Of a stretch of DNA of 64,000 bases, positions 775-34,439 are shown piece after piece; position 1 is the stretch's first letter; the number at the start of each line of letters is the position of its first letter. A program made the translations under genes and the position numbers. The notes under the pieces are model-generated. The model worked only from the letters and a program-made list of their open reading frames with translations. It ran no database searches and had not been told where the DNA came from. This DNA is from Utricularia gibba (taxonomy: Eukaryota > Plantae > Magnoliophyta), in contig NEEC01000010.1 in assembly GCA_002189035.1 (NCBI GenBank), positions 434,001-498,000 on the forward strand. The letters run 5' to 3'.

Positions 775-1900
775 TCAATTTAAATTAATCCAAATATGTT
801 CGATCAAATTTTTTTTCAAGCGATTGAATACTGCTATCACAAGAATACTTCACTCAATCTAGATAATTTTACATATTCATTCCAATATCTTTGTAACTTA
901 CTAAGGGTTGGATTATTATAGATCAATCATATCCATCTATATCAGTATCTCCAAGAATAAAATGTACTTCACTTTCAACAATCATATTATATAGTATAAT
1001 AAATGCATACATGATATCCTGAATTGACTTTGCAATATTCCAAAAGTAATTTCTATGTCTTTTTTAGTACTCTCTTGGAATTGAGCAAAAAGATGTACTT
1101 TTTGTCCCTATGAAAGTGTAATAGATTTCATGAGCAAAGCTCAATCAAAATAAATGTCATTAACCAAATAATATTTCATGTCATAAATAGAACTATTTAT
1201 TGTGAATTGTACTTGAAGGGCAACATCATTATGCAATTCATTTAGTAATGAAAAATGCCATAAAACATTGAGATTATTATTCACCTATCATTCCAAAAAA
1301 AACATGTCAAATCCACGTACCTGCAGAGGCTACTGCTTCTAACATGAGTCATATTTTGCGATGATCATCACACTGAAATTGACTATGTCATGCAATTGGA
1401 TAATTTTTTAATTCCCAATGCATACAATCCACATTATCAAGCATGTTTGGAAAGCCCCAAGATTATGCTTAAGCAAGCAAAACTTCCAAATCTTCAACCG
1501 TAGAAGCTCTCAAATATTATTTTAAAAAACAAATACGAATAGCAATAACATAATGCTATATACATTGAATAGCTGTTGTCTCTCCAATTCGAATATATTC
1601 ATCTACACTATCACCACAAGAACTAAAAGGTAACATACGTATAGCAACTATGCACTTTTGCAAAGAGCTTAGCCCTAAATGACCTGTGCAATCCATATTT
1701 TCTTGAAAAAATGAATCCTTACTTTGGAAAGTCTCAACTATTCTTACAAATAAATATATTTTCATTCGAAATCTCCTACGGAATTGTTCATATGTGTAAG
1801 TTGCATCATTACAAAAATAATAAGCCACCAACCTTTTATGTCCTAGTTCACAATTGCGCTTCACACGTTGGCGTGATCGTCACTGTCTTGAGGTTTCTTA
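775..1900 (-). pseudogene. Pong-like (PIF/Harbinger superfamily) DDE transposase, decayed
   Basis: ORF 1556-1864 has GHKRLVAYYF..FRRRFRM..LSSLQKCIVAIRML..DEYIRIGETTA. Manual translation leftwards gives GFPNMLDNVDCMHWE, LEAVAS, YYLVNDIY, QESTKKDIEITFGILQ and LIEHIW, with many stops and frameshifts. Confidence 0.9.
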
Positions 1901-2699
1901 TTGCTCTGCATGTATTTCATTACGGATGAAATCAATCCCTATGAATGATCACTGTATAATCAATATAATTTTTTTATGAAAAACTCCAGTGCATGACTCC
2001 CAAATGATGAATTCATGATATGAATGTAATTATTATATTTAGATTTTTAAACAGACAAAGTTTTTAACTACCTTTTTTTATTATCACATGCCATTTTTAT
2101 ATTTTATATACCATTTTTATTTCATCAATCACTTTTATTTTTACCTACCATTTTTTTAATTTTATCCGCCACTTTAATTTTCATCTAATACCATTTAATT
2201 TTGCTTACCACTTTTAATTATATCTAACAATATAAGTTACACTTACCATTTTTATATTCATCTAACAATATTATTTGCAAGTATGACTTTCATTTAAACC
2301 TAACAATATTATTTGCAATTATAAGTTTAAATAAAATCTAATATCTATAAAAATAAAATAACATAGCATAAGTAGATCAAATTGAATCTAAATATCAATA
2401 AATTAGAACAATACATGAATATCAAAATAAAAAAAATATAATTAAAAGAGAAATCATTCTAAGTTCGAAAGAACATTAATACACTTCAAAATCTAATCAA
2501 TCATCTGAATCAGAGAGATAACACATGCATTATCTTCTTTTTCTTTCGAAATGTTATGAAGTATAGTTAAACTCTTGACCTTTGTAAGACTATGAAATGT
2601 CAATTCATACATTTTCTTTTATTCAGGGCTCATCTTATTTACATCATTTTGAGACATCTTCAAGCAACGATCCATAAAATATAATTGATTGTAAATCTC

Positions 2700-3194
2700 C
2701 ATCAACTCATTTTTTTTTTGAAGCTCACGATGTAAGTTGTTGACAACGTTCTTGTATTCTCCAAATTATTTCTCATTAGTAGCACTAGTAAAATTCATCA
2801 ATTGTTTTTCTTTTGCTTTACGCTTTACAGCCTTTTGTCCTATAGACCTCTCTTCTTTTTCAACACTTGGAGAAGATTGCAAAGATGTAGTACGTTGCTC
2901 ATTAGATCCAATTTTTAACCTCTCCTCCAAACCTTTTCCAATGACATGATTTGGTATCAACAAAACAATAAAGTATACATACCGACATCCATTTCAACTC
3001 AAAACGCAAAACTTCTCAACACTTAATATCAACAAATCATTCTTTTTCTCATTCTTGAATAGCTCTAAAGCTTGGAGTTTGAAATCGTATTCATTGTAAC
3101 CACTTCCTCTTCTTGACATTACTCTATCTATACAATCTCCGAATTTGTTACAATAATAACTTATAATATCCCACTTGTGTCTTATAGTAATCAA
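2700..3194 (-). pseudogene. Pong ORF1 (Myb/SANT-like, NAM-associated domain) remnant
   Basis: IRHKWDIISYYCNKFGDC..SGYNEYD and ERSIGQKAVKRKAK motifs. It lies upstream of and co-oriented with the transposase, as in Pong elements. Confidence 0.75.
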
Positions 3195-3500
3195 AAACTT
3201 TCTCCTTGGTGTAGAAGGTGGTTTTCAGCTGATCCTTCTCTACGACGAAAATTTGGTGGTACCCGGAATATGCATCCATTGTGCTCAAAAATCACGATCT
3301 AGCAATGTCATCCACCAACTTATCGATCTTCGGGAGGGGGTATGGATCCCTCTTGTAGCAAGCATTGAGTTCGGTGAATTCGACACACATTCTCCATTTT
3401 CTCCCGAGCTTTGGGACAATGACGGGGTTAGCTACCCATTCGGAATATTGAATCTCCTTGATGTAGCCAGCCTCCAGCAACTCTTTCGTTTCTTTTTTAT
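3190..3500 (-). pseudogene. Ty3/gypsy Tat-lineage reverse transcriptase fragment
   Basis: LEAGYIKEIQYSEWVANPVIVPK..WRMCVEFTELN..DPYPLPKIDKLVD, continuing as FLSTMDAYSGYHQI..KTTFYT. Confidence 0.9.
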
Positions 3501-3589
3501 AATCCGATACTTTTCTTCAGAGAAATGTCACTACTTATGTCGAATCAGCTTTGCTCCCGAATAGATATCAATATGATGTTTGGCGACGG

Positions 3590-3769: not shown

Positions 3770-4362
3770 TTGACAATGTATCGGGTCGTAAATAACAGCA
3801 CCAATTCCCGATAAGACCTCACGCTGCAAGGTTCTAGCTACTTGAACCAAATCTTTCTTCCCTTCTGGAGCGAACAAGCGAATAGCTTGCACTTCATAGC
3901 TTCCGAGTGTCGGACCGTTGCCATTCTCAAGTCGAAGTCGGTCACATGGGATATAAGGTCTCCTTTTCCGTCATACGTGGGTAATCCATCAGGGAACTTG
4001 AATCCCTTCTCTGATTCTTCCCCAATTAACTCGTCCGAGAAAGGGTTAAAACGTAGTGTTGGGGTACCCACTACTCCTTCGACATTGCTTTTCAGGGCCA
4101 AATCGATATTGGCCAAAATGTCCCCTCTCCCAGTACACACGTTCTGGTCGAAGGAATCTTTGAACCCTCTGCTCTTTCTCGCCTTGGGTGGTGTTTCTCT
4201 GCCGATTAGCCTTTTCTTCTCGTGAATCTCGTCTAATCCTCTCCTCAACTCTTCCTCTCTTTTTTCCATAATTTCGCTAGCCGTATTCCCTCCCCCTGTA
4301 CCCGGCTCATAGATGACTTGGTTGCGCCTCTTCCTTCGCAATATTTCTTCCTCAGTCTCAGA
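3770..4362 (-). pseudogene. Tat retrotransposon gag, 3' part (interrupted by the hAT element)
   Basis: PFSDELI..FKFPDGLPTYDGKGDLISHVTDFDLRM..EAMKCKLFACSL..WF is a retrotransposon gag motif. It joins in frame to 18144-18245 across the TSD. Confidence 0.85.
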
Positions 4363-4528
4363 TAGAGGTGGGTTCGGTTCGAACTGAAATCGTCGGTTCC
4401 GGTTCCGGTTCGGTTCCAAGGGATGGATGTCCGTACGGTTCACGGTTCCGAATAGTAAGGTATATAAGTATATTTAAATATAAATTATACCAGTATTGCT
4501 ATCGCGAGTGTTGAATTTTGTTTTTAGG

Positions 4529-5199
4529 CAACCATTAAGGGACTGAAAGGCTTGAGAAATAAGGTATGGCCTTTTTATGAAGATTGGGTAGAGATTTTTG
4601 GAACAGATCGTGCTACCGGGAAAGATGAAGTTGCTCATGAGGAAGCTGCCAACCGTGCATCCACTGAAGTCGAAGGCAATGACTATCATGCCAATATGAA
4701 CAATGAACCAGAATCTCCAACAACTCAAATACCAGCTTTTGTGCCAATTTCAGAATCCGAATCATCTGCTCTTAATGGTGATGCTGTTGAGAATAGTGTA
4801 GGGTCACACAAGAGGAAATTTAACAAGAGACAAAGAGAGGATGAAGTTATTGGAGAACTTATTGGAGAATTAAAAGCAATGCGTAAAGGATCAGATGCTA
4901 TCACTGAACTTATACAACAAAAATTGATGGCACCTGTTGATGCTCAATTAAAGCAACAAAATGAGGCTATATCCATCCTTCGTAAAATGGACATGTTACT
5001 GACACCCATTCAGATTGTGCATGTGTCTTAGGTATAGTCTTACACAACTCTCATCATTTTTAATATCCCTATTGACAGATAATTAAATCAGTTTTCTTAT
5101 ATTCAGCTTGTGTTGAAGACGCCTGCGGACGTGCAATTGTTTTTGTGCCTCTCAGATGATGAGTGCAGAGCATTGGTCCAACAACTTTTCAGGGAATAG
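4529..5199 (+). pseudogene. PIF/Harbinger ORF1 (Myb/SANT-like) C-terminal exons
   Basis: KGLRNKVWPFYEDWVEIFGTDRATG after an AG acceptor. Last exon LVLKTPADVQLFLCLSDDECRALVQQLFRE*. The N-terminus is missing. Confidence 0.8.
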
Positions 5200-5329
5200 G
5201 TTTTATCAATGGTGCAATATTTTTTTGGGCAGCATCATCTGTTGGTGCTATTCAAGACCACGGAAAGGATCAGTTCATCCGACTTCTTACATGCACCATA
5301 GACATTATATAGTTTTGAAACATCATAGT

Positions 5330-5746
5330 TTTGAGATCATTTTCCAAGCACCCACATCTATCGTCAGCGTGTCTGGGAATGAGTGTTTCAGAAGATTTTC
5401 CAGGCACCCACTTCCATTGTATGGGTGTCTGAAATCATATATATTTATTTATTTATTTATTTTTTAATTTTTTTAATGTTTTTTAATTTTTAATTTTTTA
5501 ATGTTTTTTAATTTTTAATTTTTTAATTTTTTTCTAATTTTTAATTTTTTTATTATTTTTTAATTTTTTTCGGTTCCGAACCGAAACAGTCGGTTCATAC
5601 ATGGGTCGGAACCGTCGGTTCCATGGTTCCAAATTTACCGAACCGAACCGGAACCGTACGGACATCCATCTCCTAGAACCGAACCAGAACTGGAATCGCG
5701 GTTTCGGTTCGAGCCGCGGTTCCGGTTCGAACCGAACCCACCTCTA
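5330..5746 (-). mobile_element. Extra internal hAT terminus, inverted copy of the left-end type
   Basis: Reverse complement begins TAGAGGTGGGTTCGGTTCGAAC and shares GATGGATGTCCGTACGGTTC with the 4363 end. No matching TSD partner was found. Confidence 0.85.
5445..5570. repeat. (TTTTTAAT)-like AT minisatellite in hAT subterminal region
   Basis: Repeated ttttt(t)aat(g) units visible directly. Confidence 0.8.
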
Positions 5747-6153
5747 CTCCCGAGGCACCTACATGAGGGAAGTGGGTGCTTGGAAATGATCTTACCCACT
5801 CTTCCCAGACATCAACACAATGCATTATTCTGTAGGTGCCATTCAAAGTATAACTAAGGATCGAATGCTAATAAAATTAAAAACTAAGAAACTTTCATAT
5901 TTATCATACGGTTTAATAAATAACATATTTAAATTATTTATATTTTTAATAAACATATGTCATATGATTATAAAAATATTTTTTTTAATTGTTGCATCTC
6001 GCATGTTCTCGCATGCTTAGAAATAAATATGATTTATAAAAATGCTGATAATATTCTTAAGTTCACTTTTCAACGACATGTTCTACCATGTTTAAAAATA
6101 ACAAATGTTCAATCTTGGATATGATAGTTAACAGGAACACAAAAAATGAATGC

Positions 6154-7450
6154 CTATCTATTCATATACTCATTCCACATAATTCTTGCAAGCTCATCAC
6201 GCCATGTACACCACCGTGGAGAGGTTTCAACAGCTGTTATGAACTCACTAGCCCCTTGCTCAGCAGATTCAGTAAAATTCTCTGACACTTCGGCTTCCAA
6301 CAGATCATATGCCATATTCATTCTTACGAAATTGTGTAATAAAGCACAAGCAAGAATAATGCCACTTTGTGTTTGAACTGGATAGTAGGATGCTGACCGA
6401 AGAATGGCCCATCGAGTCTTTAAAATTCTCCATGCTCGCTCAATTACATTTCTCGCTGAGGCATGCCGCATGTTAAACAACTCTTTCGCATTTTGAGGTG
6501 CTGAATTTCTAGTACTCCATTCTTTTAAATGATAGCGTACATTCCGATATGAAGCTTGGAAGCCATCACAATTGGTGTAGCCATTATCCCATAGATAATA
6601 GCAACCTGCAATCACAACATGCATTTGTATAGTAGAATGTTTCTGAAAACAGCCTGAAACAATGGAAATTCATGCATGGAAAAACCTTTAAAAATCTTAG
6701 TAACTTCACAACTAACCTTTACATACTCGTAGACCACCAACTTCCTTCAACAAAGCACTTTTAAGTATATGGCTGTCAGCAGTCGATCCTTCCCAACCAG
6801 CAAGCATGTAAATAAAATTCATATTTTGATCACATACACCCAAGACATTGAAGGCTATTGTACCTTTTGACTTATCACACTCAAGCACCCCACGCCTCAA
6901 TATAGGACCCATCTAAAGCACCTAAACAATTCTACACTTATTACAAACATTCAACAATTAATAGTTATTAAGATAAACATTGCATAACCAAAAAATGAAA
7001 TAGTACCTCAAAAAAACATAACCTTGCTGTGGCACTGGTAGTAGTCACAGGTTCACCCTTAACTAACAGCTTATCCTGCAGGCATAAAACAGCTGCAAGA
7101 ACGGCCTTGAAGTGACAGCTAATTGTCCAAGTCGATCTTTTGAAGGATGACTTTTGAACTCGCATCTTCTTATGATGGGATAAAATACCTAAGAAAATAC
7201 AGACTTTCTCACTGATAGTTACATACTTCGAGTCACGAAGTAGACAACACAATCGTCTAAAGACGTCTCGATTCATCCTCAATTCCTCCAAAGTTGTGTT
7301 GTTCATGTTGCTAACTAATTCATGGAGATGTTCAATTTGTCATGGCATTTTCGATGTATATGAGTATCAGCATTGCTGTCTTGAACCATAAGAACGTAGT
7401 CGGAGTAGCACAATAAGCACAATAATATGAGCAATTTCGAAATTCCTTTG
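6154..7450 (-). pseudogene. PIF/Harbinger DDE transposase, decayed
   Basis: LRMNRDVFRRLC..EKVCIFLGILSHH, CLGALDGSY, NVLGVCD..AGWEGSTADS, YYLWDNGY, ELFNMRHASARNVIERAW..LK.RW..LHNF, W..RDELA..MW. Confidence 0.92.
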
Positions 7451-8140
7451 CAACAAATATGCCAATAGCAATAACTGAGCATTCTCATCAATTGATTCCA
7501 TCCAAAAAAATATTTTGGGTTCCTACAATTAATTCATCACATATAATAATTAATGCAAGAGAGACTACATGCTTATGCGTACACATATCAGGAACAAAGC
7601 AAACAATCAGAAAATACAAAATGACTATGTTTGCATTATTAAAGAAATTATTCATTCATCTTGGCTGCTAACCTTCGATTTTGATGTCTCCAAATGGTGG
7701 GACACCGAATGAATACTTTGTTGTGCCGCCGAACAGTCAAAACATGGACCTCAATTACTTGAATTTGAGACCCAACAATGGGTCTACGATCCAAATTTTC
7801 CAAGCCGGTATAGAAAATATTCACAGGTTGAGGAAGTAAATCTGTAGATGGAGGAAGAAATTCGTAGATTGAGGGGAAACAGAATCGTTAGGGTTGAAAA
7901 ATAATTTTCCCCCAAATTTAATTCAAGACAAGATGTAGATGTATTTATGGGTATTTTAGACTTTTCATAATCAAAAAGTTATCCATGTATAAGGTATAAA
8001 ATTAAGGAGGGGTTTTGATGGGGATACTTTTATGACTTATATAAAGGAAAAAAGTATCCCGAAAAAATTTATTTCTGCTTACCAAACATGTTATTATTAT
8101 CCCGCATATGGATATCCCATCTTATCCCATCTTATACTTA

Positions 8141-8156
8141 TTACCAAACACGGTCT
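8141..8156 (-). repeat. PIF/Tourist-type terminal inverted repeat (right end) next to TTA/TAA
   Basis: Reverse complement reads (TA)AGACCGTGTTTGGTAA, followed by GGGATAAG subterminal motifs. The left TIR was not found. Confidence 0.6.
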
Positions 8157-8526
8157 TAAAATACTAATGTGAAGACTAATGTGGCATCATCATATCTGAA
8201 ATTTTTATTTAAAATATATTTATTATGTATATGTTTATCTCAACGGCTAGTACATGTATTTGTGACTGTGCAGACTGTGGAGTTGCACATGGTTTTGAAA
8301 TTAACCGTTGCTATTACTTTATTAATAAAATTTTTATATATATATGATATGGTTATCTTATAGTTTTCCACTACTTTCTCATATTGTCTCATCACTCAGT
8401 ACTAGAAATAATTCTATTTCAACTTCTACGTGTTTGGAGGTACTCTCAAGTGTCAAGTTTCAGATTTCTACTTGGACGACATTGGTGAAGCCTGCAGGGT
8501 AATAGGTTTTTTTTATTTTTTACAGA

Positions 8527-10620
8527 ATGGAGGGGTCTGGTTTGCAAAATTCTTCTCAAGCATTTCAAGCTGATTCTTCTATACCTTGCGTTTTTGAAAA
8601 TGATAGAGAATTTTCTTTTGGGAAAGACCTTCAATTTTTACAAGAGCTTGAATGTGGTCCTTTACCCGAACAAGATAATTTTTCTAGTTCTCAAGAAGCG
8701 GGTTCTTCTACCTCATCGAGTCTCCTTTGTCATAAAAGATCGAAAAACACTAGTAATGATTCTTTGGATATTCGAGAACATTTTGTTTTTTGTAATCCCG
8801 AAAAAATTTCCTGCAAATATTGTGGTAAAGAGTACACTTTCAAAAAGGGTTGAGGAACCGGTACATATAAGAGGCATGTTAGGGAGAAGCATAATGATAA
8901 ATTACCTCAGTTTCGTCAAACTAAATTATGTTTAGGGGGTGACAATAGTGTGGGATTATCTAATTTTGTTTTTAATTATAAACTTTTTCAAGTAAGTTTG
9001 GTGCGTTATTTTATACTTAATGAACTTCCTTTTTCATTAGTTGAAAAACCTTCTTTTAATGATATGTTGAAACAAGCTCAACCGGGATACACAAATTTTT
9101 CTAGGAAAACCGCACATCATATGACACTTGAGGATTTTAAAAATATGCGTGACACTTTAATTTCTACTTTTGAATCTCTGCATTGTAATTTTTGTTTGAC
9201 TTGTGATGGTTGGAAAGATTGTAACAATGAGATTTATATTGTTATTACATGTTCTTGGGTAGATAATTCTTGGTGTATGCAAAAATGAATTTTTCAAGAA
9301 TAGCTATCACCACATAATGGTTTTCCTATTGCTAAAATCATTGAAAAGTTCACAGCATTTTATGGAATATCTGATAGGATTTTTTCTATTTGTTTGGATA
9401 ATGCCTCTGCAAATACAAATGCTATAGACATTTTGAAAAGTAGCATGAATTCTATCTTAAATAGCATTTTTTTCCACATTAGGTGCACTTTTCATATACT
9501 AAATTTGTGTGTTCAACATGGTTTGAAAGAATGTGAAAATTTTTTAACTCCTATTCGTGATTTAATTAGTATGATTAGAACTACCCCTAATACAAAAGAT
9601 GATTTTAAAAGGATTTGTCAAGAAAGGAACATCTCTTATTGTAAATTTAAAAGTGATTGTCCAACTAGATTGAATTCTACATATGACATGTTACAATTTT
9701 TTATTCCTTATGAACATGTTCTTATTGAATTTTGTGAATCTGTAATGGGTTACAATTTCTTGACTCATTCTAATTTTGAAAAAATAAGAGGTTTAGTAAA
9801 TTTATTAGAAATATTTTATTCTTGTACTAAGATTTTGAGTGGTATTTACTATCCAATTCTCAACTTGTGATTTCATGTATTTGTAAAATTTCGTTTGCTT
9901 TTTATAACCATCAATGTGATTGTGATTTTTTGGGAGACATAGTGCGAAATATGAAAAATAAGTTTTTGAAATATTTTGATGAAATCTCACATTTGTTTCT
10001 TATTGCACCTATTTTGGATCCCCGGGTTAAGTCTAAAGGTATGAAAACATTACTTGAATGTATTTCAGAATCATTTAGTGTGGATGATGTTGTTTTTTTC
10101 ATTAAAAAATTTGAATAAATAGATGTTGATGCCAATAATGTTCTACGTGCCATGTATTCCCTTTATGCTTCTAAATATAGTGATCTTAGTGTTCCTATTC
10201 CTAAAGCATGTAACAATTCGATATTTGGTAGTTGCAATCCAATGGACATTATTCGTAGGAAGCATAGTTCATTTGTGTCCTCCACTTCATCATCTTCATT
10301 AAACTCTGTTGATCAAATTACACTTTACAATAATGCTCCTATTGTTGAGGGTATTGATGATGACAACTTTGATATATTGGGTTGGTAGAAGACAAATTCT
10401 ACTACTTACCCTATCTTGGCTAGAATGGCCAAAGATCTTCTAACACCTTCAGCATCTATAGTGGCATCCGAAAGTGCATTTAGTGCAGGGGACAAGTTCT
10501 TAATCACAAGCGCTCCAAATTGAACGTAGAGACTCAGGAGACATGCATTTGTCTAAAGGATTGGTTGGAGGCTGTGAAAAGAAATCAAACCTTATCCTCA
10601 AGTTCAAGTGAGAGATGAAG
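8527..10620 (+). pseudogene. hAT transposase (BED finger, catalytic core, dimerisation domain), multiple stops and frameshifts
   Basis: CKYCGKEY..GTGTYKRH; LPFSLVE; LTCDGW; DNASAN; HIRCTFHILNL; DCPTRLNSTYDML; APILDPR; DILGW..YPILARMAKDLL..VASESAFS. Confidence 0.95.
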
Positions 10621-10745
10621 TTGAAGACTCTTAATTTGAAAACATTTAGTGCTTCATGAAATAATATTACTTTGTAAGAAAATGTTGTATTCATGTTTTT
10701 AATTAAAAGAGGGTGCCTAGAATTTGGTTGCAGACTTGCAAATAT

Positions 10746-11290
10746 CCTCCCGAGGCACCCACATGAGGGAAGAGGGTGTCTAGAAAACTGTATCAAATAC
10801 TCCTTCCCAGGCACCCATATAAGCGAAGTGGGTGCCTGGAAATCACTCTTCCTAGACACTCACATGATGCATTATTTTGTAGTTGCCATCCAACTCTCTT
10901 TCCTGGACACCCTCATGAGGCACCCACATGAGGGAAGAGGGTGTTTGGAAAACTATCTCAAATACTTCTTCCCAAGCACCCATATAACAAAAGTGAGTGC
11001 CTGGAAATCACTCTTCCCGAACACCCACACAATGCATTCTTTTGTAGGTGCCGTTCAACTCTCTTTCTTGGACACCCTCCCGAGGCACCCACATGAGGGA
11101 AGAGGGTGTGTGAAAAACTGTCTCAAATACTCCTTTCCAGGCACCCATATAACATAAGTGGGTGCCTAGAAATGACCTTACCCACTCTTTCCAGACACCT
11201 AAACAAGGCATTATGGGTTCCTAGAAAAGGCTATCTGACTCTATTTCCAGACACCCACACGAGGCAATGTGGGTGTCTGGAAAATGGTCT
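10746..11290 (+). repeat. Tandem array of ~165-bp units (about 3 copies); one more unit at 5747-5845
   Basis: Recurrent (C)CTCCCGAGGCACCCACATGAGGGAAGAGGGTGT at ~10747, ~10914 and ~11078, with internal GGCACCCA..TGGGTGCC inverted motifs. Confidence 0.9.
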
Positions 11291-12003
11291 ACGTGATAGA
11301 CGAATATTCTCTATTTATTGAAATTAATTTGTAGTAATTAGGATATATAAAATCATTTCATTTTCAAATTTTTATATTCCAATTAATGCAGCAACAAATT
11401 TTTATATTTATGAAAATTAAGAATACTTTCAAATATTGCGCAATCCCCAAATTTCGGGTACGGGTGCCTAATTTTGCATTTCTTGTGCCAGTCGCCCACA
11501 TTAGCGATTCTGGGTGCCTCAAAATTAGAGTATTAATTACACGATGGGTTCACAATTCGCATCGATTCAAATGAGCGGCACACACCTTGTCTGAAAACAA
11601 TGGAAACTATTACCGACAACCTACGAAAGTAGGGATATCATTGCGCCTAATCATTAGCTTATGATTTGGTGTATTAAATCAAATCCCCATGCACCCATAC
11701 ACAGTGCTACACATCACCACCCCACTCCCCACTTTACCCACTCCCCACATTGTCAATTAAGAAAACCCTAATCTCCACCCATCTGGTAAGAAATTTTTTT
11801 TACCTCTTTCCCCCTCCCCCCCTCCCCAGCCGAAAGCGACCGGATGCCCCCATAGTCCCATCACCTACTTGGAGTGTTCTTTAAATTAAACAAGGTAAGT
11901 GATTTATTTTCCACCATGTGTTGCTGATCTATGTTCCAAATTGTAATACCTTGTCGAATTATTGTAGTTTGAATTTTTATACAATTCCTATGGGTGTTTG
12001 TAG

Positions 12004-14023
12004 ATGCACACTTCTAAAAAATTGAGAACTAGATTCTTGATACCGGATGAATATGAGATTTGGGACAAAGAACCGGATGAGTTGATTGAGAATAAAATTC
12101 CAAACTGTGTGGGTCCAATGGGATTTGCCTAAAGCACAGAACATTTTCGTTGTGATTTGCGATTATCATTATTGCCCTTTTTAGAAGAAATATTAGAATG
12201 TTTAGAGATTCTTTTATCTTATTTGACTCCAAAATCTATCTCATATGTGTTGGTCTTTATTAATATTTGTGAGGAGTTATGTCTTGAGATGGAACTTCGC
12301 TATTTTTTTGCTGTGAGTGTATGCTCTAAGACTCTAAACAAGAACCACTACACCCTAAAGGGAAAAAAAAGGTTGGTGCTAGTGAAGTATGTGAGAAGAG
12401 GATTTGAAGAATGCTAGACAAGTTTTGTTTGGATATGTACTCCAATGAAAATCAAATTTGCTCAAATTTATACTAATTTGAGCGAAGTAGGCAAGGCGAA
12501 AGGTAAATCTTGCTTTGTATTGTTAGAAGAAATATGAATAAAAATATTCCATATTTTTATTGAAATATTCCATATTTGTATTGAATGTTTTTATTGAAGT
12601 TATTATGATTGAATGTTTTTTTTAATCTACTCTTATTAAAACTATTTTTATTGAATATTTTTATTCAATACCTTTTTCGAATATGTGTATTGAATTTATT
12701 GCTGTCGAGTTTACACTTATCATGTTGAATATTCTTATTTAATATTTTTGTTGAATATATTCTTAATAAATTTACTTTTATTGTAGGATTTGATACCTTG
12801 TCCAAGAGGAATATACAAGATCTTATTCTCGTCTTCTCAAGTATGCAAAGGAGTTTTGTTGACATTTTACCACCATTTGTGGATGCACCGGGGACAAAAC
12901 CCTATTGGTGTGGTGTGTTGAAAAACCCTAGAATCTCCCAAAAGAATGAAGACTTGTCTAGGAATGAGAGGACACAAGATGGAAATGATGTTAAAGGGGA
13001 CGAGGTCACACATGGTCTCGATGATGTCGATGATAAACTTGAATTTATAACAGAGGAGAATGAAGAGCTTCGCTACAAGTTGGATTGGTATGAGAGTCGT
13101 TGGGCATATACTAGACCTCCTTTTAGTGCCTCTGAGCCTCAACGAAAGCTGATTATCTTGGATGTAAATGGTGTGCTAGCAGACATCATTTATAGGGCTG
13201 GAGCGTCAAGGTCACGAATCCCTCCAGATAAAATCATATATGGCCGATCAGGTACGTTAACACAAGACTTATTTTTTGTGTGTTATGTGCATTCACGATT
13301 TATGAGATATCATAGTTAACTTTTGGTGCAAATTATGCAGTCTTTCTACGTCCACATGCCCGCGATTTTATTAGGTGGTGTTTGGATAATTTTGATGTAG
13401 TCTTATGGTCATCTCGTGGGGTTACGTGTGCTGCATCTTTTTTTCTTAGGTTGGTATTTAGAATTGGTGCAAACAATTGCAAGTGATTTATTTTGTAGGG
13501 AGCAACTACAAGCAATCACTAAATGGGTCTTTCCACCTTCGTTATTCGGCAAACTCATTTTCGTATGGGACCAAACCATGACAACGGACACCGGCGTACG
13601 TGTTCACAACAATCATAGCAAACAGTTTACATGAAGGAGTTGAGTCGTGTATGGGCTGTCAACAATGGATTGAACACAAGATATGACCGTCACAATACCT
13701 TATTAATTAATGATTCACCTCACAAGTCAATGAAAAATCCGGTAAGTCATTTTTTGCTAGTATACTCTTGCATACACTTGGTTATACATCAAAACTAACC
13801 CTTCAATTTTTAGAAAAATAATGTTGTTTTTCCAAATCCCTATTCGCATACTAATAGGGATGATGCATCACTCAATGTTGATGGTGAGATGCTGACTTTC
13901 CTTAAAGGGTTATGGCATGCTAATGATGTTCCAAGTTATGTTAATGAGAATCGAATAGGACAGCCTCCCATACGTGAGGGACATGCCTTATGGGAGTATT
14001 ATGTATGCCTACATAATTGTTAG
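12004..14023 (+). pseudogene. Spliced cargo gene: gypsy-type-transposase-like (PF04195-like) exon plus FCP1/NIF HAD phosphatase-like exons
   Basis: Inferred exons 12004-12502, 12787-13251, 13341-~13420, 13499-13741 and 13814-14023 with GT-AG introns. FCP1-like motifs: KLIILDVNGVLADI, VFLRPH..FIRWCLDNFDVVLWSS, KLIFVWDQ, NTLLINDSPHK..NP, FPNPY. Two premature stops and two 1-nt frameshifts. Confidence 0.8.
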
Positions 14024-14224
14024 ATGGAGCCTCTGATTTCTAAAGAGCCGTCCCATTTATTTTCAATTAGACAGACACTTACCAAATGTCACATTTTGAT
14101 TATGCCATTGAATTTATTTTAAAATAAATGAATAAATTAATGACAATACCTACGAAACAACTTATTTATACTGTATGGCGCTTATTTTGATTTTTTCAAT
14201 TAATTTATAGGGACAGAACATACA

Positions 14225-15520
14225 TAAAAATGTTTCTTGTAGGGGTCACCGAAATATTGAAATACTATTAAATTTGATTACAGGTGTGAATTGTTTATTA
14301 AACGATTTCCAATTACAATTGGCATCCATATTTTAAAAAATATTTTTTCGTACATAATTATTTTAAATAATTTTATGCTAAAACACAGAATTATAAGTGT
14401 GTTGTTGACATACAATCACACTTTAATTTAAAACATTTTTAGCAAAAATATAATACGAATGTAAGTTCTTGTCTAACTTAACCTCAGATGTTGTGAGGCT
14501 TAATAGAGTAAAACATTTGAGATACAATATACATATACTTGTGTGAAAAAATTTCATTTTTATAATCCTACCTTAAATATTTAGCACATTACAACATTTA
14601 TGATGATAAACGTCATCATCAAGGACCATTTATATTAAAAAATACATAAATTTCCACTTCGTGGTTTAGGGTTTTCAGGGTTTTAGGGTTTAGGGTAAAT
14701 GAAATATCTGAAATATTCCCGCCTTTTAATATGTTGCAAATGTGAAATTTTGGATGGTACATATGTAACATTGTGTTTTAGGGGCGGCAAAAAAAATTTA
14801 TGGAAACACTCTCAAATGTACTTACGGATGTGAATTGTTTATTACATAATTTACAATTCAAATTGATGTCCATCAGATACAAAATATTTTTTGTATCGAA
14901 TTTCTATTTAAAAAAACCGGTTCAAAAATCTGAAATTACAAATGTATAATTCAAAGGCAATATAATGACATTAAAGTTTATAAATAATCATCCACATTTA
15001 CATTAGACACTAATGTATCTTGTTCTCTAATTTAAATGTGAAATATTATGATGCTTTATAAAAAAAATATTGAACATATATTTGCAAAGAAACGTGGTTT
15101 TTATTATTTTTAAACTTTATTTTAATTATCGACATTTACATAGTAATGATGATAAACTTCATTACTATGAACAAGAACTACTAAAATTTTTAATGTGTAG
15201 TTTAATTAAGGGTTTAGGACAATTAAATTTGTAATAAATTCTCGTCATTTTTTTAAAAAATTAAGAATAGTTGGATTTTGAGAATGTACATTCAAACACA
15301 AGTAATGCATAGGTGTCGCTGAAATATATCCATAACTTTTTCGTTTATCATTTTTAAAATACTGAAAATTTGAAATTTGGGATGGCACATCAAATAATGA
15401 GTATTTTGTAGGTGCCGCAATTTTTTTAATTATTTTAAATAATTGATTTAGACTATATATAGATGTGAATTATTCTATGCAATATGATTTTCTGAAAAAG
15501 TTGGCATCCATTGTATAAAT
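14225..15520 (+). repeat. Old degenerate tandem repeats of ~540-600 bp
   Basis: Recurring (TGT)AGG(G/T)G..., GATGTGAATTGTTT and TTG(G/AT)(C/G)(A/T)TCCAT blocks at ~14235, ~14775 and ~15405; ATGATGATAAAC at ~14600 and ~15145. Confidence 0.55.
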
Positions 15521-15764
15521 GTACAACCCTACCTAGTTTACATCACCTTATGCTGCATACAAAGGCTCTTCTTATCAGTGTCGTCGCGCTCTTGAAAACC
15601 TAGAATTCGTCGGCTTAAAATCGGGTAATCTTGTTGTTGCAACTTACATTATTTTTGTGAAATGTATTCTATGCATTTGTTGCTACAGTATGCGTTATAT
15701 ATTCAGTTGGGTATAGTTATTAAAAATTATCTTTTCATATAATTATGTATCCTTTATTGATTAG

Positions 15765-16113
15765 GGAACGGATAGATTTCGTGTTAAATATTTCATCCCA
15801 ACAGATTGGTTGACAATTCATGCTCTGCAAAACACACCTCTTGACGCCAATCCCCCTCATGAGCATCCAAATGCTTGGCTTGTGTCTCGTAAAACATTTG
15901 ATGCTGGTCTTAGGCTACCTATTCATCCCTTTGCTCTTGATGTGCTCACCTACTTGCGATTGCCTATTAGGTTTTTAGCATCATCTTCCTATAGTATTAT
16001 ATTAGCCTTCTTACACTTGTGTGAAGAAGAATATGTAGAACCTTCCTTGTCAAATTTTTTTGCACTATCTCTTCCAAAAAAAGCTCCTACTCAAACATGG
16101 ACTATAACAATAT
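15765..16113 (+). pseudogene. Second gypsy-type-transposase-like (PF04195-like) exon, cut by a solo LTR
   Basis: After an AG acceptor: DRFRVKYFIPTDW..KTFDAGLRLPIHPFALDVLTYLRLP..SSYSIILAFLHLC..EPSLSNFF. Confidence 0.7.
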
Positions 16114-17490
16114 TGATAAACGGGAATTTCCTAATATCGTTGCAAATAAAAATAAAAAATCCGTATCAAATAAATTTATAATCCCTAATCTACACAAAAT
16201 AAAAATTTGGAAAACTTGTACAGTGGATATCGGGGTCGATCACGAAGACCTTGTGCTTGCTAAGTGTTTTAATACATGCATAATTTCGGATAACAATAGG
16301 TCTTAGTCTAAGCTCGGACTAACAGTGGTAAACAAGTTCAGTAAACAAGGTAGGTAAGCAATATCAGGTTTCTACGCTAGGGTAATAGGTACTGGTTTTG
16401 ACTCAGACTAATATGAGGATGCCTTAAGGGTCTGTGGGTTGTGTTATGCTAAGATTCCTAACTCAATTTATTATCTTCCTACACTCACAACTTCAAATAA
16501 CCTAAGTCTACCCAGGTCATTCATCATATTTTTGGCTTAAACTAGTCCCCAATATCATAACCAATTTTGCAATTGGGTCTACCCGCATGCAAGGTATATA
16601 GAACTAAATCTACCCGGTTCTACTGGTTCTACCCTGGACTAACACCGACTGCTCCCGTCTTGGTTTGTTGGTCTACCTCTAAACGAAGCATCTAAGTTGT
16701 GAAACTACTTGTTTCCCTCCTTTGGTCTACCCATGGTTTGTTAAAAACAAGAGTTAAGGAATACACATAAATTTCATTATCAAACCTAAGCACACACCAC
16801 ACCCCTTCACCTTAAGGCATCCCTAAGACTCTAGCCACTCATGCTTTGGAAATAAAACACGATTTCATTCATATAAGCTGGCCAAAATGGCAGAAACATT
16901 GTAACAAGTCAAATGCAGAAACTTGAAATGTTCAGAAAAACGGAAAGCAAATAGATATTGTTTTTCCGCCCGCTATCTACTGTTCACAGCTCTGAATAGT
17001 AGTGCTGGACTGGGCTCCGGTTGTGTTCATGATGATGAAGGCCTCTCTTCCCCCCTCTGGTTGGTGTTTCTCCCGTTGGGGAAGAAGACCCCCTTGCGTC
17101 CCCCTCGCTATGTGTTCTCCTTTTCCCGCTCTCTCCTTTTCGAAAATAATATCTTCCCTCATTTACTCCCACGCACAGTTTCTGACACCATCACTGTTCT
17201 CGCCCTGAACTTTTAGACTGTAGGTGGCGGAACAGTGCTCTTTATCTCTTGCAGCTTGGTGACTTTCACGAAATTCAGATCTCTTCCTTGATTCTTGGGT
17301 TGCTGCTAGACTCCAAAATCGGGTTAGATATGGGGTGGGCTAAATCAAAGAATTTAGCCCACTAATCACACCAAAAATTACATTTTCCTAAATTTCATAA
17401 AAACACTTAAAATTATAAAATAAACACATAAACAAGATTAAAAATTCATGATTTTTCATATCCTAAAACCTGAAAATTTGTGTGCTATCA
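16114..17490 (-). mobile_element. Solo LTR A1 (Athila-like)
   Basis: TG...CA termini; TSD AATAT on both sides; highly similar to 28940-30357. Confidence 0.92.
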
Positions 17491-18143
17491 AATATTTATT
17501 AATTTTTAGTGAAATTAACTTATTTCGGATTATATTATATATTAAACTTATACCAAATTATTTATTATATATTGAACTTATACCAAATTTATTTATTTCA
17601 TATTATTATATTAAACTCTCACCAAATTACTTATTTTTACAGATAATGTTAATATAACATTGTTATGTTTTATTTTTCTGTGAATATGTAAGACTAAATT
17701 CTTTAAATGTATTCACTTTTTAATAATAATAAAAATTTCAAAAATATTAAAGATTTAAACTAAAAATAATTTATTAGTAATATAGTTGAAAAAAATACTT
17801 TTTCGTACATATATATTAATATGATTTAAAATAAAAATCAATTCTTGAAATATTTAATATTTATTAAAATTTTCACTTCCAAGACACCCATAAGGATTCA
17901 TATGGGTGCCTAGAAAGCACCTACAAATAGTAACCATGTTTTCGGTTACGGTTCAGTTCGTAAATCTTGGTTTCGGTTTTGAATCGAAACCGTCTGTATA
18001 GTTCCAGTTTCGGTTCAGTTCAAGCCTTCCGGATACGGTTCCAAACCGAAACCGGAACCGTTGCCCACGGCAAACCGCGGTTTTGAAACCGACGGTTCGC
18101 TGGAACCGCTCGGTTCCAAACCGAACCCACCTCTAGTCTCAGA

Positions 18144-18245
18144 TGCAGTCTCCATCTCCTGGAGATAGTCCAGTAGTAAGGGTTGCTTATCCATTCGTCG
18201 TTTTGTTTCGGGCGTCCCCCCTCTTGCGCGTTGGAGTTCACCCAC
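18144..18245 (-). pseudogene. Tat gag, 5' part
   Basis: GELQRARGG..QEMETA joins S-E-T-EEEILRRK at 4362 in frame. It lies downstream of the PBS and LTR. Confidence 0.8.
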
Positions 18246-18436
18246 GAGGATAACTTAATGTCGGAAATATCTCCGTCATGAGGGCTTTAAGTTGTTCCGT
18301 GTTGATTACCATAAGGTCGGGGTCTTATACACCGGAACTGCCTTCGTTGCTGGAGTTGGTGGACGTGTTGTTTTCCACCATAATGAATGTTTGGTGGGTA
18401 ACTTCTGTGGATTTCTCAAGTGGAACAATAGATCTT

Positions 18437-22290: not shown

Positions 22291-22701
22291 AATCAAATGT
22301 CATGTAATTTAGGTGTTATGAAGCATTTTATATTGTAAATGTTTTGATATTGGGCATTTAATTGTACATATTTTTAAGCCAAACTTTAATTATTGCATCC
22401 TTCTCATATGAACCTCGAATTTATAGAGATTAGCAACTCATGAACATCAGGAGATTTAATGTTTAAAAATGAATCCACCCAAGTTTATCCTCAAAAAAAT
22501 GAGTATCTTGCAATTAGATTATGAAAGAAATGAGAAATAAGGAGTCACATTTCAAATAGAAAATGAATTGGAAGTAATAATCCTTAAACATTACAAGCTC
22601 AAAATATTGATAAGTTAAGAGTGATTCAAAAAAGAGAAAATTTCTCATAAAAGTCATAAAAAAAAGTTAAAGATACTTCAAAAAATACATCTTTAGAGTA
22701 T

Positions 22702-23750
22702 TTATACACGGAAATTTCTTAATATCGTTACAATAAAAATAGAAATCCCTATCAAATAAATTTATAAGCTCTAATCCTCACAAAATATAAATTAAACACA
22801 AAGTGTACAGTAGAATTTAGGGTCGATCACAAGGAGCTTGTGCTTGCAATGTGTTTTTTGTGATGCAAAATGCGGTGCAACAGTGGTTCTTAGTCTAATC
22901 TTAAACTAACAGTAGTGAACAAGTTCAGTAAACAAGATTGGGTCTCAATGCTAAAAGTAAAAAGTGCTAGTTCTAACTCAGAGTAATACTAAGATGCCTT
23001 AAGGATTTGCAGGTGATGTGGTGCTAAGGTGTCTAATTTAATTTATCATGCTCCTACACACACAACTCTAAATAACCTAAGTCTACCCAAATCATTCATC
23101 ATATTTTCGACTAAGCTAGTTCTCAATATCATCACCAACATTGTAATTAGATCTACCGGTATGCAAAGCACATAGAACTAGGTCTACCCGGTTCTACGGG
23201 TTCCACCCCAGACTAACACCTACTACTCCCGTCTTGATTTGTTGGTCTACCTTTAAATCAAGTGTCTAAGATGCGAAGCTGTTCATTTCCCTCCTTAGGT
23301 CTACCCATGGAATATTAGAAACAAAAGCTAAGAAGCAATGATGAATTTTGTTATGAACCTTAGCTCCCACATAACCATTTTACTCTCTAAGGCATCCCCT
23401 AAGGCTTAACTACTCATACTTTGATGGTAAAACATAATAATATTAACATCAAGCAACGAAAATACCAAAAACATCGTGAAAGAGTTGGTTGCAGAAACTA
23501 AAAATGTCAAAAAATGAAAGTAAAATAGAGATAGTTCTGGTTTCTGTCGGCTACTGTTCATAGGCCGGAACAGTAGCGCTGGACTAGGTCTTGATCTTCG
23601 CTCTTCACGCTGGAGGTTCTTCTCTAGAAAAATCGCCTTCCTTTTTCTTTTTGGTTCCTGTTTGTCGTGTTGGAGTTGGGGGAGAAACCCCCTCGTATGT
23701 GTTCTGTTCGAATTGGTCACCCTCTTTGCGATTCTCTCTCCTCCGAGAGA
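22702..23750 (-). mobile_element. Truncated family-A LTR
   Basis: Homologous to A1/A2 from its terminus (acggaaatttc.taatatcgtt..tcaaataaatttata). The other end is missing and there is no TSD. Confidence 0.75.
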
Positions 23751-27580: not shown

Positions 27581-28709
27581 AATAACTTAAGTTATTTTTA
27601 TTTAAGTTTATACTTCAAATTAAGTGATTTTGAAATGGTTTTTATTGAAAACAGAAATAACTTCTGTTTTTTTGGAACAGTTTCATATCTGCTTCTATCA
27701 CCTTTTGAATCACTTTTTTTGAAGCGCTTTTAATAAAGTGGAAATAAACATACCTTTAGTTTTTAAGAAAATTGCACTCAGGTCGTCCAGATCGAACTAT
27801 ATCCACCTAAACAATTCTATTCAAATGAAAACATTAATTAGTTTATATTGTCAATATGAATAAACAAAAATTCACACTTGGAAATATTTGAAATTGTTTG
27901 ATGCATTTTCATCAACTATGCGTTTTGGATTTACTAATAACTTATTTTGTATCATAAGTAGAGTATTTAACATAATATTAAAATATTTAAAGATCATGTA
28001 AGTTGATCTTTCATAGTCTCATTTTTGTAAACAAACTTAAATATGATGTGCTAGTATCTCTAATAAAAATATCAATCTGCTCCAGCACTTTAACATATAT
28101 TATATCTAGAATCATGTAAACAATAATACATAATAATACAACACATACATAGCCTCCCAAATGTATCTTTGTTCATTTTCAAACTTTAGAAAGCACTATT
28201 ATTAAAATCAAACACAAATCTACTGAGACTCTTCATTTGTCTTGAAATTTTTTCTAGATAATAATACTTTCTCATTTCAAGTCTTTTATATAAATCATCC
28301 TCAGCTATTTCTTTGAAATATTCTTTAACATACTTCATAAATAGCAAATTCCATGTACTGATTTTAAAAACAATCAAACACATGGCTTCTTCTACAATGT
28401 TATCATCCATAATGTTATCTACAAAAAATATGTCCAAGAAAATAATATTTTTTAAAAATATAATTCACATAATCCAAAAAAAAAACTAATCAAATCAACA
28501 TAAAAAGATCAAAATTAATGTTTTCTTTTGTTGAATGCATAAAATACTTAAAAGATTTGGGATTTGGGATTTTCTTAACGCTATCGAGATAAGGATTTGG
28601 AATTTTCTTAGAGAATAATAATATTAAATAAATTTATCAATAAAAAATTAAAAATGTCCAAATCAATCATTTAAAGTCTGGATATTAATAAACTCATCAA
28701 TATGGTAGG

Positions 28710-31292
28710 TGATAATCATGGTTTTTAGTAATTTTAAATTAGAAAAATGACTGTTATTATTGTGCATAATTAAGATTTTGTTAAGTGTTTGATGTTTTTG
28801 TGATTAGCAAAGCTATTTATATATTTTATTCCAGATTGGGTCTAAATCCTTGATTTAGTTGAAAAACCTTGATTTAATTATTTTCCTTAGAGCAATGCAC
28901 CACAATCCCAATAATCCAAATCATGAAGAACTGAAAATGTGATAAACGGAAATTTCCTAATATCGTTGTAAATAAAAATAGAAAATCCGTATGAAATAAA
29001 TTTATAGTCCCTAATCTACACAAAATACAAATTTGGAAAACTTGTGTAATGGATATCGGGGTCGATCAAGAAGAGCTTGTGCTTGCTAAGTATTTTAGTA
29101 GATGCAAGATTTCGGATAACAGTAGGTCTTAGTCTAAGCTCAAACTAACAGTGGTAAACAAGTTCAGTAAACAAAGTAGGTAAGCAATATTAGGTTTCTA
29201 CACTAGGGTAATAGGTACTGGTTTTAACTCAGACTAATATGAGAATGCTTTAAGGGTCTGCAGGTGGTGTTATGTTAAGCTTCCTAATTCAATTTATTAT
29301 CTTACTACACTCACAACTTCAAATAACCTAAGTCTACCCAGGTCATTCATTATATTTTTGGCTTAAGCTAGTTCTCAATGTCATAACCCACATTGCAATT
29401 GGGTCTACATGCATGCAAGGTATATAGAACTAAGTCTACCCGGTTCTACTGGTTCTATCCTGGACTAATACCGACTGCTCCTGTCTTGGTTTGTTGGTCT
29501 ACCTCTAAACCAAGCATCTAAGTTGTGAAACTACTTGTTTCCCTCCTTAGGTCTACCCATGGTTTGTTAGAAACAAGAGTTAAGGAATACACATAAATTT
29601 CATCATCAAACCTAAGCACACACCACACCACTTCACCTTAAGACATCCCTAAGACTCTAGCCACTCATGCTTGGGAAATAAAATACGATTTCATTCATGT
29701 AAGTTGGCCAAAATGGCAGAAACATTGTAAATAAGTAAAACGCAGAAACTTGAAATGTTCAGAAAACAGAAAGTAAATAGGATTGTTCTCCCGCCCGATA
29801 GCTACTGTTCACAGCCCGGAACAGTAGCACTGGACTGGGCTCCGGTGCTGTTCTTGATGATGGAGGCCTCCCTTCCCCCTTCTGGTTGGTGTTTTTCCCG
29901 TTGGGGAAGAAGACTCCCTTGCGTCCCCCTGCTGTCCGCTTCACTTCGTGCTCCCCTTCTTTTTTCGAATTAATTTCCTTTTCTTTTGCTTCACTCCATT
30001 GCACTGTTTCTGACTGCCAGTACTGTTCCTGACCGCGAGTACTGCTCCTGGCCTGAACTTGCAGACTGCGGTGGCAGCAGAACAATGCTCTTTGTCCTTC
30101 TCCGGATTTTGCGCCCTTTTTTGCTTGTTTTACACGCTTGCAAGTCTGATTTTCGGCTCATCTCCCTGCTGAACTTACTGAGACATTAGTAACAAGAGTT
30201 GTGGACTAAATCAAAGGATTTAGTCCACTTTTCAACATAATCACATAGGATTAACATAAACACCACTAAATCATGAAAAATCACATTTATCTAAACTAAA
30301 CCATAATAAAATATAACCATTTTGTATTTTGAAATTTAGGAAAAATGTGTGTCATCAAAATGCATACTGGATGTGGCAGTAAAATGGGACAAAAAGAAGG
30401 AAAGAGAAACACCAAATTTCAAAGAGACAAGAAAGTAAACTTTTGAACAAGATAGGATAGATCAACTTCAAAAATATGAAAGGAGTCTTGAAAGGGGATC
30501 TGGAGAAAAATCATAGAAGAATGATGAAGGAAGATGGAAGAAACCAAGAACCAAACTCGTCTTTGAAGATTTTCTTTATTTATCAAAAATATTACTCTTA
30601 GTTAGAAATAAATCACAACGATTTAACATTCTTCATTTAACTATTTATATTTCATTCCTTTTTATTTTCTTGGTATCAAGGTGTGATATGAACATATTGT
30701 GGATGATGTTTTATGTGCTAGTTTTCTTCTACATGAGTAACTAGTATCAAATGGTGCCTTAGAACCAAAGAGGACAAAAATGTTCATTGTTCATTAAATC
30801 ATATTAACCATATAATTGTGCTAGTTGCTTAACAAACTACAGGAAGGGAAAATAATGGTATGTTCATCATAAGCAAACCTTAATTAGAGTTAGATCAAAG
30901 ATTAAGGGAAAACAAGGGTTTGGAAAGACTTGAACTTTTATTGATTAGATGAATGATTTTTTGTTTGGATGAGATAAAGATAGTGATGAACATGTTCTTT
31001 GAAGTCTTAAGGCATTGCATTGATTTCCTTTAGATAGAACTTTGATTCACTCATTTATTTTTTTTATTATATTGTATTAGAATTTTGCATTCAACCTAAC
31101 TTAGACTTAATCTTTCATCATGAAAGAATAGAATACATTATCTTTTATATGATAAGCACAAAACTCTTCGTGTTCGATATTAATCTACTATGCTTGTACT
31201 TGTCTTATGATTAAGTGTGAATTATATTTATAAATTTATTTGGTAGTAAATTTTGCATTTTATTCAATGATCTACGAATTTTTCGTTTATCG
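28710..31292 (+). mobile_element. Older family-A-like LTR hosting solo LTR A2
   Basis: Starts TGATAATCAT.., ends ..TTTCGTTTATCG, and is similar to 59537-60693. Its TSD is not convincing. Confidence 0.6.
28940..30357 (-). mobile_element. Solo LTR A2 (Athila-like)
   Basis: TG...CA termini; TSD AAATG on both sides; highly similar to A1. Confidence 0.92.
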
Positions 31293-33318: not shown

Positions 33319-34439
33319 ATTGTTTCTAACATCTTCATTCAATTTTTCATCCAATTTCGATCTATTAACTTTAACTCTCATACATTTGTTGTTCGTCCAT
33401 CGATCCATACTTTTTTGTCCCCACCATCACTATCACTTACATTATTGCTCATCACATCATCTATATTTTCCATCATCGATTTCTTTTTATACTCTTCAAA
33501 TAAAGCTAGAGAATTTTTCTTATCTCAAAAATCATATCAACTGATTTTTTTATCACAAATATCATTTAAGCAATCGTAATACTCAAATTTTTTACGAGGA
33601 TAAAAAATAACAACAATGAATAGTAACTTATTCATCTTTTATGCATCACCTCAATACTTCAAATACTTTTCTCTTATTTTTATTGCTATTTCAATCAAAT
33701 TCACATTACTCGAGTTTTGCTATTCACATAAAGCTTTATCAATGTTAAGTGTCATTTTTTAGTTATCATTATGTATTATTATGTGTTAATTTAGTATCAA
33801 GTCGTCTAAATTAGGAGTCATATTGATAAGTATTTGATTTTATTAACAAAATCCTATTTTTGTATTTTGTACATATTTTGTTTTTTTTTTCGTGCACTTT
33901 CACCTAAAATGTCAGGAGGCAAGCTTGAAGTGTTGCAAGAGATTTTCAGGAGACCAGACACTGACGTTTCATACCTTTCACACACTTTGGTCAATTTTGG
34001 ATGAAAGACTCACACTAGTCAGTACCTTTAACTTACAGCATTTCAGAGTCTGCAACAATGATTGGGCATTTATTTGCATGCATGGGAAAACTAGTGGCGC
34101 ATGCAAGACAAAAAGAATGATGGGAAGGGTAGCATAATGAGTTAATGCATGTGAGGAGTGAGATAAAATCAACTTGGAACACTTGTTTTGGGATTTTTGA
34201 CACTTACTTTTCGCACTTAAAACTTTTGGTTCTTCCTCTTCTCCAAGTGAGGAAGAACACTTTAGCTTTTGAATTTCATTTTTTGTTTTCATGGCCATTC
34301 GTGGCTAAATCTTTTTAGTTTTTGGGAGTAGATGAAGTTTCCTTCCAAGTCTTGCGCATTAATCTCGGTTCTTTGCTGAATTCATTTCGGATTTTACATA
34401 CTTCCATGCATCTTGTTGTAGTCTTTCTGTAACATCTTC

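Follow-up and report, generated by a model that had tools for sequence, protein, structure and literature searches.

A DNA transposon unit of the hAT superfamily with three termini rather than two occupies positions 4363-18135 of a 64,000-nucleotide window of the Utricularia gibba genome (contig NEEC01000010.1, positions 434,001 to 498,000 of the forward strand). With confidence somewhat short of even, we favor the reading that this 13,773 bp integration unit arose from two related hAT elements, a short one (element A, 4363-5746) and a large one carrying several genes (element B, 5747-18135), and that the outer end of A and the 3' end of B were mobilized together. The first-pass annotation of the sequence had described one large cargo-carrying hAT element. 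The part of that description that stood is that a hAT unit carries much beyond a transposase; the unit was not a simple element, having three termini.

The 17-nucleotide terminus, TAGAGGTGGGTTCGGTT, was found in exact copies at 4363-4379 on the plus strand and at 18119-18135 and 5730-5746 on the minus strand of the 64-kb window, where the chance expectation is approximately 0.11 matches even if three mismatches are allowed. The two outer termini are abutted by an 8 bp target-site duplication, GTCTCAGA, the left copy of which (4355-4362) is identical to the right copy (18136-18143) at all eight positions. An unbiased scan of 4300-18200 for terminal inverted repeats (TIRs) associated with duplications of 5 or 8-10 bp returned 4363/18135 as the sole clean pair. 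The identical 17 bp TIRs, the perfect duplication and the delimitation of the integration unit had all been reported by the first-pass annotation and were borne out. The CGGTT/AACCG motif, which is repeated in the subterminal regions, is clustered at just three places, 4351-4500, 5501-5800 and 17901-18200, indicating three ends in all, with none concealed; a fourth terminus was not found in the window either by the exact 17-mer or by the clustering of this motif. The 8 bp duplication, the short TIRs (17 of 17 positions) and the repeated subterminal motifs place the 4363-18135 unit in the hAT superfamily. Searches of the literature for a terminus of the TAGAGGTGGGTTCGGTT type gave primer matches only, a 21-nucleotide pattern of the terminus had no match in a metagenome scan, and Rfam had no match within positions 1-24000.

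The duplication pairs the terminus at 4363 with that at 18135. The inner terminus at 5730-5746 is intact and the other expected inner terminus is absent. Moreover, the two outer ends differ in subtype. The left end belongs to a complete, symmetric, non-autonomous hAT unit of 1,384 bp, element A (4363-5746, plus strand), which is bounded by exact 17-mers at 4363-4379 (outer) and 5730-5746 (inner) and has two ends that are alike over approximately 97 nucleotides (alignment score 89, compared with 5 ± 2.6 and a maximum of 22 for shuffled sequences). The right end, a CGGTT/AACCG-rich subterminal region together with its 17-nucleotide terminus (17940-18135, minus strand), has in common with the left end only the 17-nucleotide terminus and the motif composition, and the alignment score of the two (23) is inside the shuffle range. 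The right flank of A is CTCCCGAG, which is unlike its left flank. Element A consequently lacks a duplication of its own at 4363-5746 and did not insert here by itself.

The interior of A contains an open piece of 167 codons (4528-5028, plus strand) that may be the C-terminal part of a Myb/SANT (At2g29880-like) gene. The suggestion comes from language-model look-alikes, plant clusters with PF24769 or PF12776 at scores of 0.82-0.93, and is a lead only; the piece has no Pfam match, and a protein word search was blank within its length window. Toward the inner end of A, two palindrome units (5341-5434, minus strand, located by alignment to the array described below) are followed by an AT-rich, microsatellite-like tract (5442-5569).

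Palindrome units of this type are nearly confined to the integration unit, with 17 of the 18 matches to the motif in the window falling within 4363-18135. The main array (10678-11525, plus strand), located directly 3' of the stop codon of the hAT transposase pseudogene of element B, includes 2.6 tandem copies of a 165 bp unit at 10746-11173. Another unit (5747-5846, plus strand) opens at the first base after the inner terminus of A and is 75-91% identical to the units at 10747-11214, while one unit and a partial unit, found by motif search and alignment, lie at 17874-17927, just inside the right subterminal region. The units within A are inverted relative to the one just outside it: 5341-5434 aligned with 11189-11290 with a score of 61 as the reverse complement and 28 in the forward direction, and the corresponding scores for 5747-5846 were 24 and 85. 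A single array split by an inserted end fragment is disfavored, the orientations on the two sides being opposite. We also considered a Mutator-like element with the palindromes at 5750 and 17917 as its borders; this candidate was rejected, as it has no 9 bp duplication, and the apparent inverted repeat formed by the two palindromes is trivial because each is self-complementary.

The target of the integration was a gag-like frame on the minus strand, which now consists of an upstream flank of 37 codons (18144-18254, assigned by reading frame) and a downstream flank of 171 codons (3841-4354) with an FKFP..YDG..D motif recognized by eye. Both copies of the duplication read TCT GAG AC- in the same phase on the minus strand, with codon starts at 4362 and 18143. 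The empty site would be a continuous frame made up of the 37 codons, the 8-nucleotide duplication and a further 514 nucleotides, approximately 211 codons from stop to stop, a length obtained by codon-phase arithmetic on the separately translated flanks rather than from a joined sequence. The earlier claim that the frame is rejoined by deleting the element and one copy of the duplication was confirmed in this manner. The longest open pieces in the window, of about 211 codons, are at the gag flank; neither strand of the window has an open reading frame (ORF) of at least 220 amino acids, and no empty-site paralog of the gag-like frame was found in it. The ten best named language-model clusters for the downstream flank all carried Retrotrans_gag (PF03732) with a score of 0.90, which is again a lead only; there was no Pfam match to 3841-4354 even at E values up to 10, and the word search was blank within its length window. 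The stretch at the end of the downstream flank is putatively where a Ty3/gypsy capsid domain begins.

The host retroelement, putatively of the Tat lineage as the first-pass annotation had it, is a dead, rearranged remnant that has been truncated, deleted and interrupted. Its gag was previously described as still open, but within the gag-like domain the frame meets a stop codon (3838-3840). N-terminal motifs of a reverse transcriptase (YPLP..D..VD and SGYHQI, identified by eye) occur in a stretch of approximately 120 codons (3151-3516, minus strand) for which no Pfam match was obtained. These motifs start only about 325 nucleotides past the gag stop, indicating that the rest of gag and the protease were deleted. 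Further downstream on the same strand is a PIF-type element with Plant_tran matches at 926-1284 (E = 4e-5 to 4e-6). This PIF/Pong-type element (900-3224, minus strand) comprises two Plant_tran pieces (926-1063 and 1144-1284), the N-terminal region of a transposase (1559-1879) and, at 2997-3224, a piece of a Myb-like first ORF that was read by eye.

Element B, the 12.4 kb that lie beyond A (5747-18135), has no left end of its own and most likely constitutes the main part of a large and dead hAT element with several genes, the 5' end of which is missing. Its central feature is a near full-length, Ac-like hAT transposase pseudogene (8677-10618, plus strand) with matches to PF14372 (E = 2.5e-10) and PF05699 (E = 1.3e-9). 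The pseudogene is colinear with residues ~31-688 of hAT relatives of 663-706 amino acids and is spread over three frames. The first-pass annotation was correct in assigning several stops and frameshifts to it; there are five premature stops, beginning at 8851, 9286, 9301, 10116 and 10386, and two frameshifts. The predicted product is of the hAT type, with an insertion domain in the RNase-H-like core and a C-terminal hAT dimerization domain, a classification made from its own domains and independently of the termini. A full HMMER search returned 2,954 hAT relatives, none of them close; the closest public sequences were 40-47% identical, the named ones being from Ananas and Genlisea and one of them called a 'putative AC transposase'. 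The protein word search with a 188-amino acid piece of the pseudogene was blank within its length window.

The window also contains a second, unrelated hAT transposase remnant (37900-39965, minus strand), which is 26-31% identical to the same public relatives and has no palindrome motif or TAGAGGTGGG terminus nearby.

Three other pieces of coding sequence were recognized in element B. A Harbinger-type transposase pseudogene with at least one frameshift and with stops (6157-7339, minus strand) was identified by its DDE_Tnp_4 domain (PF13359; E = 2.5e-11 at 6157-6669 and E = 2.2e-5 at 6715-6912). Searches around it for terminal repeats and for a duplication gave nothing convincing. On the other side of the hAT transposase is the remnant of a spliced Transposase_28 (TRP28)/NIF-phosphatase-like gene (11690-14020, plus strand) preceded by a CT-rich, promoter-like leader that was read by eye. 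The exons were searched one by one and never joined; PF04195 matched at 12133-12414 (E = 7e-6) and PF03031 at 13316-13483 (E = 0.0018, weaker than the Pfam cut-off). An in-frame stop at 12130-12132 falls within a conserved domain of this gene. The third piece is another Transposase_28 fragment (15765-16178, plus strand; PF04195, E = 2.8e-9) that is 35% identical to the first. Transposase_28 is known as an antisense accessory ORF of Retand retrotransposons (PMC11963269). The passengers recognized in the unit as a whole are therefore DDE_Tnp_4, Transposase_28, a weak NIF match and the possible Myb/At2g29880-like piece in A; no host-gene fragment with a parental copy was shown. Judged by these domains, the recognizable passengers are all predicted to be transposon or transposon-associated genes, and none an ordinary host-gene fragment. 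Nested elements with clean borders were not found inside the unit: TIRs with duplications of 5, 8, 9 or 10 bp, 9-mer direct repeats at candidate borders and Harbinger ends were all sought by scanning, and whatever came up was AT-rich and attributable to chance.

Several details of the Transposase_28/NIF-like gene may be recorded here. The leader (11690-11900, plus strand) has a telo-box-like AAACCCTAA in addition to the CT-rich tract, and there is an apparent intron in the 5' untranslated region, with a GT at approximately 11896 and an AG directly before the ATG at 12004. In the NIF-like part (13250-13290, plus strand), the sequence LDVNGVL, read by eye, is present where the phosphatase motif DxDx(T/V) would be expected. 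With asparagine at the position of the second catalytic aspartate, the product may be phosphatase-like and not active.

The reading that we favor starts from what is observed, namely three termini, a duplication pairing the outermost ones, an element A that is complete and the genes carried, and would connect these by the following order of events. At a donor site, A would have been present in direct orientation in or beside the 5' palindrome region of B. A transposase supplied in trans would then have paired the outer terminus of A with the 3' terminus of B, and the whole 13.8 kb would have been excised as a unit and integrated into the gag remnant of the retrotransposon, creating the 8 bp duplication. 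The 5' end of B itself, being outside the chosen pair, would have been left behind at the donor site, which would explain why there are three termini rather than four. The locus could then be a preserved intermediate of transposon growth by end-skipping, in which a short hAT element is fused with a large one bearing accessory genes and one inner terminus is still perfect; we hold this view tentatively. Several considerations weigh against this history. Integration of B alone, followed by alteration, yields an identical final sequence. Element A lacks a private duplication, and an independent copy of it was not seen, so that it may never have moved as an element; if the family needs unlike 5' and 3' ends, A, whose ends are similar, might be an immobile passenger structure. 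Finally, insertion of the Harbinger element or of the ~1.25-kb repeat near the right end of B after the integration could mean that the unit was shorter when it moved.

The most serious alternative, somewhat unlikely in itself and nearly as likely as the end-pairing history that we favor, reverses the order of these events. Element B would have entered gag alone, through its own left end and the end at 18135. Later, A would have inserted within B in direct orientation, a few hundred bases from that left end, and recombination or single-strand annealing between the two directly oriented left ends would then have removed the terminus of B together with the left copy of A's own duplication, leaving the terminus of A flush with the duplication in gag. 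This sequence of events produces exactly the three-ended structure that is observed and accounts for the lack of a duplication around A. The palindrome unit that forms the right flank of A resembles the others in B, as if A had landed there, and hAT insertions are often local and in the same orientation (PMC8903248). The cost is two additional events, one of which must be an in-register deletion, when homology between the A-type and B-type ends is seen only in the 17-nucleotide terminus and the motif composition. A related proposal, which we consider improbable, assigns the terminus at 4363 to B itself and regards that at 5746 as the remnant of a truncated member of the family nested in inverted orientation in the 5' region of B, so that plain integration was followed by nesting and decay. 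The inner end does resemble the left end in inverted orientation, palindrome units are found on both sides of the AT-rich tract and terminus, and nested Ds-like elements are known (PMC3260210). However, the other end of the nested element is absent and there is no flanking duplication, an extra deletion would be required, and the opposite orientation of the palindromes on the two sides speaks against a single array divided by an insertion.

It had initially been proposed that the locus is a single, very large Pack-hAT-like element that captured its cargo piecewise, carries an inert inner terminus and was mobilized in trans after its transposase had decayed. The outer TIRs and the duplication are indeed perfect, several non-transposase genes are aboard, Pack-hAT elements are documented, and Ds elements with gene fragments have been described as well (PMC3260210). 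Nevertheless, this origin is doubtful, slightly less so than that of a nested remnant. The Pack-hAT-like label was not supported because Pack-TYPE elements are by definition non-autonomous (PMC8903248), while this unit has kept a transposase pseudogene of nearly full length and its passengers are transposon-associated genes. The timing argument, which contrasted the decayed transposase with an open host frame, carries no statistical weight; at the rate at which the transposase was disrupted, 7 events per 1,942 nucleotides, a stretch of 633 nucleotides stays open approximately 10% of the time. There is, moreover, no basis for placing the decay before the movement because the host frame has a premature stop followed by a deletion and a further insertion, that of the PIF element. 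A false join in the assembly of two hAT-bearing regions, for example at the repeated terminus or at a palindrome, is highly improbable. Repeats are abundant in the region, and an assembler might be misled by three identical 17-mers, but a single reading frame links the two outer flanks, with a perfect duplication, which is not expected of a chance misjoin, and there are no Ns in the window.

The repeat mentioned above has a copy of approximately 1.25 kb within B (16114-17360, plus strand) and is also present outside the element, the copy in B being 92% identical to 28940-29930, in a copy that extends over 28940-30190, and 74.5% identical to 22699-23588. The three copies are direct (all on the plus strand), and matches in all six frames suggest that it is probably non-coding. 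A small conserved hairpin of the repeat is located near 17333-17362. Just upstream of the copy at 28.9 kb there is a second, weak Harbinger-like N-terminal region (27875-28266, minus strand) with 32-40% amino acid identity to 7004-7366. Another repeat family, with units of 0.6-1.3 kb that are 75-82% identical, has several direct copies at 33742-37862, an inverted copy at 50275-51519 and weaker copies at 58.5-59.1 kb.

The copy described here is dead, and its sole consequence was to split a retroelement that was already defunct. If the unit moved whole, it would be a clean natural example of the enlargement of a hAT element by pairing of the ends of neighboring elements, a route of growth for which the evidence to date comes chiefly from genetic work in maize and, for Pack-TYPE elements, from comparative inference. 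Such a case would demonstrate that giant hAT elements are built by macrotransposition in a plant other than maize, with no genetic selection applied, and a three-ended structure of this kind would be able to cause further alternative transposition and rearrangements. For annotation, the lesson is that outer repeats and a duplication do not guarantee a single element, and internal termini should consequently be searched for.

Structures with more than two hAT termini in close proximity are familiar from maize. In the double Ds, the chromosome-breaking form of Ds, one element is inverted within an identical copy, giving four ends that can drive aberrant transposition. The 4363-18135 unit resembles the double Ds in having more than two termini of one hAT family close together and differs in having three ends and two unlike partners. 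The compound Ds-like elements of maize B73, such as the 7,344 bp Ds-l4-483 (PMC3260210), likewise have hAT ends that enclose extraneous sequence, including other transposons; many of them lie within repetitive sequence and have ceased to respond to transposase. In contrast to these elements, the unit described here is larger, carries a full-length transposase pseudogene and has a complete short relative at one end.

The closest parallels are the Ac/Ds macrotransposons of maize (Huang and Dooner 2008, as cited in PMC9910405 and PMC3260210). Units of 10.3 and 28 kb, both Ac macrotransposons, are reported to leave their site and insert again with 8 bp duplications (PMC9910405); a Ds-Ac macrotransposon moved approximately 100 kb, and compound Ds elements exist (PMC3260210). 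As would be the case here, the termini of two hAT elements act as a pair, the tens of kilobases between them move, and an 8 bp duplication is formed or left as a footprint. The differences are that the maize cases were tracked by genetics, while in U. gibba the end product alone is seen, with three termini rather than four, in a family other than Ac and in a dead copy whose movement as a unit we infer. A model in which two neighboring elements with compatible ends are mobilized as one has been proposed for the growth of Pack-TYPE elements (Catoni 2019; Gisby and Catoni 2022, PMC8903248). In that model, the external ends of two nearby elements are recognized, giving rise to one larger element, as may have happened here, and the inner ends disappear or acquire mutations; elements of an 'AB' type, with two smaller ones inside, have been documented. 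Unlike Pack-TYPE elements, which are non-autonomous and carry host coding DNA, the present unit contains a transposase pseudogene and transposon-associated genes, and one inner terminus is perfect (17 of 17). A composite of a short hAT element and a large, multi-gene hAT element fits this known way of transposon growth.

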